Below, piece after piece: positions 24,388 through 31,851 of a stretch of 64,000 nucleotides of DNA. The stretch is from Anthoceros angustus (Eukaryota; Plantae; Anthocerotophyta): the NCBI GenBank assembly GCA_010909165.1, contig MU008165.1, forward strand, positions 186,001 to 250,000, given 5' to 3'. The first letter of the stretch is position 1. Each line of letters begins with the position of its first letter. A model generated the notes under the pieces. It was given only the letters and a program-made list of their open reading frames with translations, searched no databases and was not told the origin of the DNA. The translations under genes and the position numbers were made by a program.

Positions 24388-25554
24388 CTTTGCATTTTTC
24401 TTTTGGAACTCGTTGGGAGTTCAAAGATAACCAATTGGGCACTTTTGTGTACAGGCCAACAAAAATGAAGAGTCCTCTTGGGCATCACGTAGGAGTGAAG
24501 GACGACCAGGATGACATATTGAATGCTCAAGAATGGTTGGTGATGTCATTGGGCATAGAGTTGACATTCATTCGGATGGGCTGTATGTTCTTTCCCAAAC
24601 CTTCTTTCTGTGGCTGATAATGTAAATCCACAAGATACTAGAAACCTCACTTTAGTATGAAGATTGTCTCACTTGTATTACATGTCCTTCGATTCTAGAG
24701 GTGTGACATACTCTTTGTGATTGTAGAGATTTGCAGTTCCCTCATCACCCCAATGAAACTGTGCAGGCAGAGGCCCACTATGGCTGCAACGAAGTAAGTC
24801 ACCAAGAACTTTAGCTACATGGATAAATTATGGCTTGGTACTAGAAGGGTGCAAGATTTTGTTGATCAAGTTTGTGGAATATGTCATGTGTGGTGTATGT
24901 GCTTTCATTTGCAGAGGGTGAAGTACTTCCTTTATTCAGGCCATTTTTCCATTGATGGGCTCAAGATGTCAAAGTCTCTCAAGAACTTTATCACCATAAA
25001 GAGGTCTTTTGCTCAGGCACTGCTATGTATATTTTTCTTTGTTTTAACTTTTCCTGGTCCGATTCGTGTACGCTTTTCTTGTGCACTGGCTCAACCTCAG
25101 CCACGAAGGATGAATGATGTGCTGGAATTCAGAAAATGAAGCTATATGCGTCTAGAATGTGCTTCTTCAATCCCTTCTTCACAAGAAGAAGAATAAATTT
25201 ATTTAAGTCCACTAAGGACGGATTTCCGTCATGGGACTTGGTACTTAACAACTTGTACCATGATGTGCCTAAGCTACTTGCACCAAGGGTATCCACTCCC
25301 TTTACGCACCCCATCTAAGTACCGATCTAAGCGCAGGATGCTTAATAGCTAAGTTCCTATAAATGTGTGTCCATTTGGCCTAAGCCATTTGGACACACAT
25401 TCCTAGCAAGCCTAATAAGTTTCTTAGCATCCAAGCTTACTAATTGTGCCCCTGCTGATAGCTTCTTTGCTACATTGTTACTTTCAGTCTGTTCTCTCCA
25501 CTTTTGTGGCTTCACAGGTTGGTATTATATATAGGCCTTGAAGAAGAGAACAAT

Positions 25555-25880: not shown

Positions 25881-28328
25881 GTGAATATGGCGCTGCCGTT
25901 GCAGCCAGGGCCGCGGGCTGGGCTGCCCGACTCGGGCAACCGAGCGATGAAGCAGCACAGGTCACTGCAAGCTGGTGGGTTGCAGCCGAGCAGGCCAGGG
26001 CCGCTTTCCCACGGAGCCTGGGACTCTCAGGCACGCCCTTCCGCAGTCCGGGCGGGGAAGGGGAGTCCAGGCCACCCTGATTTCAGGTACAAGACTTCCA
26101 GGGACGAGCTGCGGCCGAGGGGCGCGGGCAAGCCCTTGTGGGTGCATTCCCAGCTGGCTGCAAGGGGGGCCGGGGTGGAGGGCTTCGGTTCGGGGAGTGG
26201 GGTTTTGGTGGAAAGATTGAGCAGGCGGCCTGAGGAAGGAGAGCTGGTTGATGCTGTTGGGGAGCTGGACCGACTTGTGAAGCAGGGTTGTGTGATAAGC
26301 GAGTCTCTGTTGTACCGGGTGCTGAAGAGGTGCGTGGCAGAGAAGTCTTTCGTGCTTGGCAGGCGTGTGCATGACCTTTCTTTGAGATGTGGGTACGAGG
26401 GGAACGCGTTCTTGGCTAACCATATTATAGGTATGTATGCCGCTCATGGAAAACTGGAAGAAGCGAAGCGTGTGTTTGCCACCGTCGCTGTGCCCAATGT
26501 CTACATGTGGTCTTCCATTATTTTGGCGTATGCTCGACATGGGCTGCCGGCAGAGGCTATAGGGCTGTATCGTAGAATGCGGGAGTCGACTGTCCAGGCA
26601 GATGACCACATATTTGTGGCAGTTCTCAAGGCTTGTGCTGGTGCATCGGATCTGGCTGCAGGGAAGGAGGTTCATGGTGATGTTGTGGAGAGTGGGACTC
26701 GGGTAGGTGTATTTGTTGGCAACGCTCTGGTGGATATGTATGCCAAGTGCGGGAGCTTGGAAGATGCCTGCCGGCTGTTCGAAGGTATGACATCTAGAGA
26801 TGTGGTGACGTGGACTGCCTTGATCACAGGATATGCACAGCAGGGGATGTGGCAAGAAGCTCTTGATCTGTATGCACGTATGCAGGTGGATGGTATGACT
26901 CCTGGAAATCATTATACTTTTGCCTGTCTCCTCCGAGCTTGTGCTGGGGCTGGAGCACTGCACCAAGGCAAGCAGCTGCATGCACAGATTGAGCGAAGAG
27001 GACTGGAATCTGATCTTGTTGTTGGGAACTGCCTCGTGGACATGTATGCAAAATGTGGAAGTCTAGTGGATGCTCGTAGAGTTTTTGACAGATTGCCCGC
27101 AAGGGATGTGGTGACATGGACATCCATGGTGGCAGGGTACGCTCAGAATGGACTTGCGCAAGAAGCTCTTGATCTGTATACGAGTATGCAACAACAGGGT
27201 GTAACTCCTGCCAATCAGGTCACATTCGTGTGCCTCCTTCAGGCATGCGCTAGTGTAGGGGCCGTGCTTCAGGGTAAGCAGTTACATGTGCAGATAGAGG
27301 AAAAGGGACTAGGAGATGATTTGCTCGTCGGCAATGGCTTGGTTGACATGTATGTTAAATGTGGGAGGCTGGAGGATGCTCGCAGGGTTTTTGAGAGGCT
27401 TCCTACACGTGATGCAGTGACATGGAGTGCTCTGCTCAATGGCTATGCAGAACATGGTGATGCTCTGTCTGCAATGAAATGTTTTGAAGAGATGTGCGAG
27501 CAGGGTTTTGAGCCTACTGAGACGATTTTTATTTGTCTGCTTGTGGCATGCAGTCATGCAGGCCTGGTAAGCGAGGGCCAGGATTATTTTAGGATAATGG
27601 TGGAGGAGTATGGCATTGTGCCCACTGATTACCACTACAACTGCATGGTTGATCTTCTTGGGCGGTCAGGCTGTCTGGACGAGGCAGAGACCTTTCTGCA
27701 GACTAAGCCATTTGATGACCATTCTGTAGCGTGGAGATCATTGCTTAGTGCCTGCTATAGTCATGGTGATGCAGAGCGTGCCAGCCGATGTTTCCAGCAT
27801 CTTGTGGAACTGGAACCTGACAATGCAACAGCTTATGTCCTGATGGGCAACATATATGCAGATGCTGGTAGGTATGAGGATCTAGACCGCGTAGAGAACC
27901 TGAGAAAGGCTGCAGGTGCTTGGAAGAAGTCCGCAAGGGCATGCATCGAGGTGAAGAACAAGGTGCACCAATTTTGTGTGGGAGAGACGAGGTGCGATTT
28001 TCCGGCAATGCTTAGCAATCTTGATGTGAGCGCGATGGAGGAAGGAGGCTCTATGCCACAAACAGGTCTGTTGCTCAAGGCTGTCCCTGATCAGGAGAAG
28101 GAAGATGTCTTGTGCGGGCATGCGGAGATCCTGGCCTTGGCATATGGTCTCCTGAACACCCCAGATGGCACACCTTTGCTGATTACCAAAAATCTGCGCA
28201 TGTGCAATGACTGCCACAGTAGCTCCAAGACCTTGTCACGGCTTGAGAAGAGAGAGATCATTATCAGAGATGCCCACCAAGTACACCATTTCTCAGATGG
28301 GTCTTGTTCATGTCGAGATCATCATTGA
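25881..28328 (+). CDS. Intronless PLS-class PPR protein with E1/E2 and a DYW:KP (DRH-like) deaminase domain; candidate organellar RNA-editing factor
   Basis: 815-aa ORF with ~14 L/S/P motifs (e.g. VFVGNALVDMYAKCGSLEDA, DVVTWTALITGYAQ), P2-L2-S2, E1 and E2. It continues WKKSARACIEV...LCGHAEILALAYGLLNTPDGTPLLITKNLRMCNDCH...HHFSDGSCSCRDHH*. Confidence 0.97.
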   Translation: MNMALPLQPGPRAGLPDSGNRAMKQHRSLQAGGLQPSRPGPLSHGAWDSQARPSAVRAGKGSPGHPDFRYKTSRDELRPRGAGKPLWVHSQLAARGAGVEGFGSGSGVLVERLSRRPEEGELVDAVGELDRLVKQGCVISESLLYRVLKRCVAEKSFVLGRRVHDLSLRCGYEGNAFLANHIIGMYAAHGKLEEAKRVFATVAVPNVYMWSSIILAYARHGLPAEAIGLYRRMRESTVQADDHIFVAVLKACAGASDLAAGKEVHGDVVESGTRVGVFVGNALVDMYAKCGSLEDACRLFEGMTSRDVVTWTALITGYAQQGMWQEALDLYARMQVDGMTPGNHYTFACLLRACAGAGALHQGKQLHAQIERRGLESDLVVGNCLVDMYAKCGSLVDARRVFDRLPARDVVTWTSMVAGYAQNGLAQEALDLYTSMQQQGVTPANQVTFVCLLQACASVGAVLQGKQLHVQIEEKGLGDDLLVGNGLVDMYVKCGRLEDARRVFERLPTRDAVTWSALLNGYAEHGDALSAMKCFEEMCEQGFEPTETIFICLLVACSHAGLVSEGQDYFRIMVEEYGIVPTDYHYNCMVDLLGRSGCLDEAETFLQTKPFDDHSVAWRSLLSACYSHGDAERASRCFQHLVELEPDNATAYVLMGNIYADAGRYEDLDRVENLRKAAGAWKKSARACIEVKNKVHQFCVGETRCDFPAMLSNLDVSAMEEGGSMPQTGLLLKAVPDQEKEDVLCGHAEILALAYGLLNTPDGTPLLITKNLRMCNDCHSSSKTLSRLEKREIIIRDAHQVHHFSDGSCSCRDHH

Positions 28329-30561: not shown

Positions 30562-31851
30562 ATGGTTAAGTTAACGATGATCGCTCGTGTAACGGACGGC
30601 CTCCCCTTGGCGGAGGGATTAGATGATGGCAGGACGGAGAGGGACTGGGATGTTTACAAGCAGCAGGCGAAATCCGTGTTTAAGAAGCTGTCGCAGGGCG
30701 CGCATGAGCCTTCCCGCATGTCTGTAGAGACGGGACCGTATTTCTTCCAGTATCCTCTTAGCCTAGGGTAGTAGAGCTGGTTTGGTTGTGTGTGCCAAGG
30801 ATTGAGGCATTGGTGTGGATTCTGGAAAATGCATGCTCGTGGTAGGGTTTGGTGGAGGATTCGTTGGCAGCTCCATGTGGTTCGGATAGGCGGTCGAACA
30901 TAAATTATATTCTGGAGAGTTTCCTGTTTGCCTTGACTGATATTTTCCAGCTACATCATCGAGGGTGGCGTTTGTTATCTTACATTATGTGAACGAGCTT
31001 ATCCTAAGAAGCTGGCTTTTCAGTACCTCGAGGACCTGCAGAAAGAGTTCGAGAAGGTGAACAGGTCGCAAATAGAGACAGTTGCTAGGCCGTATGCGTT
31101 TGTGAAGTTTGGTGAGTATCTTGTCACTTGCACTCAGAGTTCGTGCCATTTCTCTAAAGTTGATACGGCACTGACTGCTGGCTATGCCGTTGACAGTAAA
31201 GTTGCATGCGGTGTTGTGTCTTGCTTCCCTTCTATGGATTGTCGAGCACGGCTAGTTCTGTGTGTTACATCATGACTGTTCAGGACAATGTTGTGGAAGT
31301 TCTCAGGTTTTGTTTGTGGCTGCAGACACCTTCATTCAAAAAACACGGAAGCTGTATCAGGATACTCGAACACAAAGGAACCTTTCTAAGCTAAACGATG
31401 ATCTGTTCGAGGTTCAGCAGATTATGACACGAAACATCCAAGAAGTGCTCGGTATTGGGGACAGGCTTGACCGTAAGTATCAGCGAACAGCAATGACTCC
31501 CCTTATACTTTTAGCCAAGACTTGTTGCTGCATTGGATTTCACATGCCCGGAGAAGGTTGTCCTTCACCAACAACCACAGCGACTTACAGTTTATGAGGC
31601 TCTTTGCAGAGGCGACTCAGAAGTCAAACAGATTAACGAGCGAGTCTCGCCTGTATGTCACCAAGGCGAAGGACCTGAATAGACAGGTAACTGCTACTGC
31701 TGCACCTCGGCATTTCCAACAATCTTTGCGGACCTTTGGTCTCACCGTTTTCATGTGTATGCAGGCATTGATCAAGAAGTGGGCACCAGTGGCCATTGTT
31801 GTCGGCATCGTTCTCCTCATGCTTTTTGCGAGGAGATACTTGTGGGGTTAG
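30562..31851 (+). CDS. SEC22: R-SNARE SEC22 (longin + SNARE + TM), multi-exon
   Basis: [24 protein letters not shown]...[35 protein letters not shown]; [52 protein letters not shown]; C-terminal [19 protein letters not shown]. Confidence 0.97.
30750..30950 (+). other. U12-type GT-AG intron (SEC22 intron 1)
   Basis: Donor GTATCCTCT; branch-like CCTTGAC at 30931-30937, with its A 14 nt before the acceptor TTTTCCAG. Splicing restores FH|YII. Confidence 0.8.

Follow-up and report, generated by a model that had tools for sequence, protein, structure and literature searches.

An Anthoceros angustus PPR gene of the U-to-C-linked DYW:KP class with isoleucine next to the catalytic glutamate

For the enzymes behind U-to-C RNA editing, the DYW:KP proteins are, to our knowledge, the sole candidates. 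We analysed one such gene in a 64,000-nucleotide stretch of Anthoceros angustus DNA from contig MU008165.1 (hereafter the window, in which all positions are counted). It is the only PPR gene within the 64-kb window, an uninterrupted open reading frame (ORF) of 815 codons at 25881-28328 (+), and the domain that carries the deaminase motifs (the query) forms its C-terminus. The ORF constitutes an intact nuclear gene of a plant, and its product belongs to the U-to-C-linked class of organelle RNA-editing proteins, as an ordinary member except for an isoleucine at domain position 68, immediately after the catalytic glutamate.

DRH and GRP endings mark two hornwort KP subgroups, and tracheophyte KP proteins cluster separately from them (PMC9478123). 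As recounted in PMC9478123, hornwort DRH-type proteins (Gerke 2020, Gutmann 2020) were the basis of the designer protein KP1; the designers KP2 and KP3 are active in the U-to-C direction in E. coli and HEK293T cells (PMC9478123). The definition of DYW:KP, the U-to-C activity of designers KP2, KP3 and KP6, and the requirement for Lys88 have likewise been described (PMC9478123, PMC11845758, PMC11332814). Published work already covers the family, its subtypes and the connection with U-to-C editing, and the present gene adds little to the catalogue, hornwort genomes holding very many such genes. What makes it useful is one natural substitution: the position concerned holds a basic residue in about 99% of DYW domains, and its importance has been indicated by mutagenesis of C-to-U enzymes.

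How does the query compare with these systems? Like hornwort DRH-type DYW:KP domains, it has 133 residues, a KxAxA box, HAE, Lys88, CxxCH, CSC and a tail-final His, at the end of a PLS-E1-E2-DYW protein. Unlike them, it carries Ser2 for Pro, RDHH for GDRH, and Ile68 for Lys (0/72 KP-like domains). With GRP-type hornwort KP proteins and KP2/KP3 it shares the KP clade, Lys88 and all active-site motifs bar position 68, although GGRP rows form a clade of their own, with the query outside. The DYW:PG domains that deaminate C (OTP86, 7o4e/7o4f; consPPR-DYW, 9kfx; DYW1, 7w86; PPR56) have the same fold, zinc ligands, catalytic Glu and Lys88 (K915 of OTP86), but differ in their PG box, HSE, three extra residues, Phe119 and DYW tail.

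The domain and its class

The coding sequence and the elements of its C-terminal domain are as follows.

25887..28328 (+), PLS-class PPR-DYW:KP coding sequence, intronless, 813 amino acids from the first ATG, stop codon TGA at 28326-28328
27927..28325 (+), DYW:KP deaminase-like domain, 133 residues, DRH-like, ending RDHH (Pfam 2e-33, profiles, tree, fold)
27927-27953 (+), KSARACIEV (translation)
27927..27941 (+), K1-S2-A3-R4-A5, KPAxA box in which Ser takes the place of Pro2 (translation, alignment)
28119-28136 (+), HAEILA, with codons cat for H65, gcg for A66, gag for E67 and atc for I68
28119..28130 (+), H65-A66-E67-I68: zinc ligand, KP-type Ala, catalytic Glu and unusual Ile (codons, alignment)
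28188..28190 (+), Lys88 (AAA) in TKNLRMC (alignment; role from PMC11845758)
28200-28217 (+), MCNDCH (translation)
28203..28217 (+), C93-N-D-C96-H97, the CxxCH zinc signature (family-invariant)
28305..28325 (+), C127-S-C129-R-D-H-H, the second-zinc CxC pair (C127 and C129 invariant) and the C-terminal tail, followed by the stop codon

The initial annotation had read KSARACIEV, HAEILA, MCNDCH and CSCRDHH in a domain placed at 27870-28328. Translation of this interval on the + strand reproduces all four motifs exactly, and its opposite strand has many stops. The end of the span holds as well, but position 27870 still belongs to the E2 motif, and the DYW domain itself starts at 27927. Pfam matched the ORF product to PPR (1.7e-68), E_motif (6.5e-14) and DYW_deaminase (2e-33, residues 723-814), E-values that place the reading of the motifs far beyond chance. 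H65, E67, K88, C93, C96, H97, C127, C129 and the lysines before the box are all present, and Lys88 is K in 59/59 KP-like domains.

Three word-indexed searches, together with an exhaustive search of representatives, supplied the DYW domains for comparison, of which the 218 that spanned the full domain were aligned. Non-HSE domains made up the KP-like set and HSE domains the PG-like set, with 15 sequences held out of each profile. The query scored 192.9 bits against the KP profile and 151.6 against the PG profile, a difference of +41.3, whereas held-out controls gave +8 to +55 for KP domains and -66 to -8 for PG domains. We then have a second line of evidence in a maximum-likelihood tree of 60 KP-like and 40 PG-like domains (IQ-TREE, LG+C20; support given as ultrafast bootstrap/SH-like approximate likelihood ratio test, the bootstrap stopping short of full convergence). 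The KP/PG split is supported at 97/86, and the query lies inside a 43-row KP clade supported at 99/94. Thus, the DYW:KP membership that had been proposed at the outset, with hidden Markov models or phylogeny named as the check, was borne out by both approaches.

Individual positions agree with this placement. Position 66, between the zinc His and the Glu, is Ala in the query (HAE), as in 42/59 KP-like domains, a further 13/59 having Cys; PG-like domains are defined by Ser at this position, so there is no independent PG count for it. KP domains run to 132-133 residues and do not have the xHP of the 136-residue PG type. The segment between positions 14 and 40 spans 26 residues in the query and most KP rows and 29 in 148 PG rows, and the query, at 133 residues, is without the three-residue stretch of the PG types. 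Its C-terminal triplet is DHH, not DYW. The domain is therefore DYW:KP and not DYW:PG, and on its sequence it falls among the DRH/GRP-type domains.

Within the KP clade, the query falls in a 20-row group with the tails GDRH, GDAH, GDHH and GGRP, whose support is weak (84/48). The rows nearest to it end in GDRH, GDAH or GDHH, and the GGRP rows form a separate starred clade (100/97) that does not contain it. A DRH-type affinity is possible, with a group supported at 84/48, a tail reading D-H-H rather than D-R-H, and relatives that come mostly from Logan assemblies and are presumably of hornwort origin. The terminal branch of the query (0.29) is close to the median (0.27).

A sequence search of solved structures returned the synthetic PPR-DYW protein 9kfx (3e-38), DYW1 7w86 and OTP86 7o4e. 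AlphaFold2, run on a 30-sequence alignment, modelled the deaminase core with a predicted local distance difference test score (pLDDT) above 89 (mean 80 overall; below 50 in the gating region, residues 23-50). When the predicted model was submitted to Foldseek, 9kfx, 7o4f, 7o4e and 7w86 ranked first (E 7e-13 to 1e-7).

Isoleucine 68 and the activity of the domain

Besides Lys68 to Ile, the initial annotation had counted Pro2 to Ser and the DHH ending as deviations that might alter activity. Only the first stands out from the family. Among 59 KP-like domains, 45 have Pro at position 2, 6 have Ala and 2 have Ser, so that Pro2 is typical but not obligatory; Ser2 recurs in P0012, the closest full-length relative (60% identity), whose box reads RSA, and K1, A3 and A5 are kept in the query. 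The DHH tail is found again in P0149 (GDHH) and in P0014 (RDHH, with an identical CSCRDHH), and the last triplet of KP proteins is known to be variable (PMC11845758). Judged by these sequences, Ser2 and the DHH tail appear to be normal family variation.

Position 68 is another matter: 275 of 278 domains (72/72 KP-like, 203/206 PG-like) carry a Lys or an Arg there, and the query carries an Ile. The three exceptions are all PG-type; one of them, P0127, is also without Lys88 and Cys93, and another, P0156, has an aberrant tail. To turn ATC, the codon of Ile68, into one for Lys or Arg would take two or more nucleotide changes, and thus Ile68 is not a single-base error. In a profile-to-PDB alignment, position 68 corresponds to the Arg of OTP86 HSER (R895), the Lys of 9kfx HSEK and an Arg of DYW1, an equivalence taken from sequence alignment. 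Position 68 is not the lysine implicated in U-to-C chemistry, which is Lys88.

What does the basic residue do in other enzymes? In OTP86, R895 hydrogen-bonds the zinc ligand C920 and offsets the charge of the active site, and in the active state it bonds D872; it has been likened to Arg56 of Bacillus subtilis cytidine deaminase (PMC7611903). Arg56 is likewise a basic residue after the catalytic Glu and compensates zinc-thiolate charge, and the structures with Arg56 substitutions (1ux0, 1uwz, 1ux1) are remote fold matches of the query model. Unlike the query, the Bacillus enzyme acts on a free nucleoside, has three Cys ligands and no PPR tract, and is only ~13% identical. A comparison of Ile68 with Lys68 would bear on whether charge compensation at the zinc site matters for U-to-C editing as it does for deamination.

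We examined how far the rest of the domain has drifted. Of the columns with 90% conservation or more across the 42-row KP clade, position 68 is the only one that differs in the query, and many relatives differ at more, which argues against decay. Measured against the 23-row DRH/GRP group, the query is altered in six such columns, in five cases conservatively (Val/Ile/Leu, Thr/Ser), the third highest count and no outlier. Overall, the domain looks constrained, with a single unusual active-site change.

By a modest margin of confidence, we favour the reading in which Ile68 weakens the catalysis of a site-specific organellar editing factor, of the U-to-C class, that still works. The intact ORF, the Pfam domains, the KP profile and tree, the retained catalytic and zinc residues and the modelled core fold all support it. 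By homology, the protein would enter the plastid or the mitochondrion, where its fourteen PPR motifs together with E1 and E2 would bind one RNA site, the predicted element ending four nucleotides before the target. The C-terminal zinc-dependent domain would then convert the target U to C by a Lys88-dependent mechanism, as in designer KP proteins, the direction being that expected of the class. Ile68 would remove the side chain that in OTP86 bonds the zinc-ligand Cys and offsets charge, and we expect catalysis to be reduced rather than abolished.

Several observations weigh against a working editor. Activity has not yet been demonstrated for any natural DYW:KP protein (PMC11845758), no orthologue was found in the searched collection, and the S2 motif carries an unusual code, NH. 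Ile68 may abolish activity altogether, since the position is basic in nearly every domain, OTP86 R895A is inactive, though poorly soluble too (PMC7611903), and changing K to R in the HSEK of PPR56 is enough to drop editing from 56% to 18% (PMC9508816).

A domain that is dead or nearly so through the replacement of Lys/Arg68 by Ile is the main rival, which we regard as possible but distinctly less probable. The protein would be kept as an RNA-binding specificity or stabilising factor, possibly with a deaminase supplied in trans (as for E-type PPR proteins with DYW1 or MEF8), or it would be a redundant paralogue starting to decay. The conservation of position 68, the inactivity of OTP86 R895A, with R895 a partner of the zinc ligand C920 (PMC7611903), and the threefold loss that K to R already causes in PPR56 (PMC9508816) all speak for such a domain, as do the further degeneration of two of the three exceptional domains and a codon that cannot be put down to a one-base assembly error. 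Redundancy is plausible as well, PPR genes making up ~7.9% of Anthoceros angustus genes (PMC7027989). Against this, the inactivity of R895A is partly a stability effect, given its poor solubility (PMC7611903). In the query, every other conserved residue is kept, position 68 is the sole departure at the conserved columns of the KP clade, and the ORF is intact. TadA and the APOBECs, which are His/Cys/Cys deaminases, carry a hydrophobic residue after the catalytic Glu, and a basic one is thus not required by the fold; for this reason an active editor stays ahead of a dead domain.

The same comparison opens a more daring view of Ile68, as a tolerated or adaptive active-site variant: a natural DYW:KP enzyme would then dispense with the charge-compensating Lys/Arg and carry a TadA/APOBEC-like HAE-I signature. 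We hold this to be doubtful. If true, Lys/Arg68 would be dispensable for U-to-C editing, or would tune its direction or turnover, and the gene would be a natural lead for the engineering of U-to-C base editors.

Direction of editing

Might an active domain work mainly from C to U, or in both directions, instead of from U to C? The designer KP6 edits both ways in human cells, and E64G, L113V and F133H, changes towards the 133-residue KP consensus, were each enough to make a C-to-U enzyme of it (PMC11845758); Gly64 and His133 are present in the query. However, so are Cys6, Ala116 and Val119, which push KP6 towards U-to-C and likewise approach that consensus (PMC11845758), and the query retains Lys88, which is required for U-to-C editing. 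Gly64 is the commonest residue in KP-like domains (48/59), and His133, found in 15/59, is yet usual in hornwort DRH-type rows. The direction-linked residues are thus widespread among KP-like domains and do not single out this gene. Together with the advantage of 41 bits for the KP profile over PG, these points make a mainly C-to-U or dual enzyme improbable.

A canonical DYW:PG C-to-U editor misread as KP, for which only the shared fold and zinc motifs could speak, is ruled out by the profile test and the tree, in keeping with HAE in place of HSE, KSA in place of xPG, a length of 133 residues against 136, Val119 where PG types have Phe, and the lack of a DYW tail.

RNA recognition, relatives and neighbouring sequence

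Upstream of the deaminase domain, the protein has the following parts.

25887..26048 (+), N-terminal leader, a possible organelle transit peptide judged by composition
26049..26165 (+), degenerate PDF-type (OSB-like) module, C-terminal two thirds only (residues 57-95, profile score)
26301..27722 (+), fourteen PPR motifs in the order L1-S1, three times P1-L1-S1, P2-L2-S2 (manual segmentation; residues 141-614)
27723-27824 (+), E1 PPR-like motif, code RN (Pfam E_motif 6.5e-14, segmentation)
27825-27926 (+), E2 PPR-like motif, code VK (same Pfam E_motif evidence as E1, segmentation)

Translation can begin at an ATG at 25887, flanked by A at -3 and G at +4; the next ATG follows at 25947. In the first 140 residues of the ORF (138 from the first ATG, before the PPR array), G, R, L, A, P and S are abundant and acidic residues few, and Pfam gave no match on the ~140 residues ahead of the array. 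We built a PDFKHK-module profile from modules collected in this analysis at the N-termini of other PLS-PPR proteins. Residues 57-95 scored 29.2 bits against it, compared with a maximum of 2.1 bits in 500 shuffles. The module retains the R..K..P.PDF[KR][HY]K...PxWV..LA part and has lost the LWxEFFxDPSQWWDN half; full modules occur in the relatives P0007 (DRH) and P0010 (GRP). Its presence at residues 57-95 implies that the coding region begins upstream of it.

Motif lengths of 31, 35 or 36 residues in PLS order, followed by E1, E2 and DYW, are the architecture of the PLS class. Two of the triplets are 68% identical in protein, and we considered a recent internal duplication of a PLS triplet; it was rejected, their DNA having diverged at many positions, and the likeness is taken to be that of ordinary PLS repeats.

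The fifth and last residues of the fourteen PPR motifs read YN, NN, SD, VG, ND, TN, AD, ND, TN, VD, ND, ST, IT and NH. Under the usual code for P and S motifs, they predict an RNA element 5'-nYGnUAnUAnURnY-3' upstream of the target, with S2 at -4. The S2 motif (27627-27722) ends in His, giving the code NH, whereas ND is found in five of the seven relatives nearest to the query, and E1 has RN where most relatives have TN. The motifs closest to the edited base thus seem to carry unusual specificity residues. The PPR codes of the seven nearest relatives are all unlike those of the query, and none of these relatives is therefore a functional orthologue.

Orthologues were sought by word-indexed searches with the query and with the relative P0001 and by an exhaustive representative search; nothing exceeded 66% identity within the domain or 60% across the whole protein. 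The exact protein, tried with three possible starts, had no match in the searched sequence collection. On the Logan contig that carries P0012, a second PLS-PPR gene with an E motif (L001:3371-5902, -) lies tail to tail with it at ~470 bp, which suggests that PPR genes are clustered in that source genome.

Around the PPR gene, the window holds a probable exon of a class I cysteinyl-tRNA synthetase and other split genes, and the position of the PPR gene between them identifies it as nuclear. The synthetase sequence is an ORF fragment at 24819-25139 (+) that carries a KMSKS-type motif and matches PF01406, the catalytic domain of class I cysteinyl-tRNA synthetases (7.9e-08). It lies a short way upstream of the PPR gene and probably represents one exon of a split nuclear gene. 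A short ORF at 30562-30771 (+), on which Pfam gave no match for the fragment, was recognised by eye, and we take it to be a possible first exon of a SEC22-type longin-domain gene. Finally, a 339-codon antisense ORF at 25962-26981 (-) overlaps the 5' part of the PPR gene; we put it down to the G+C richness of the coding strand and do not regard it as a gene.

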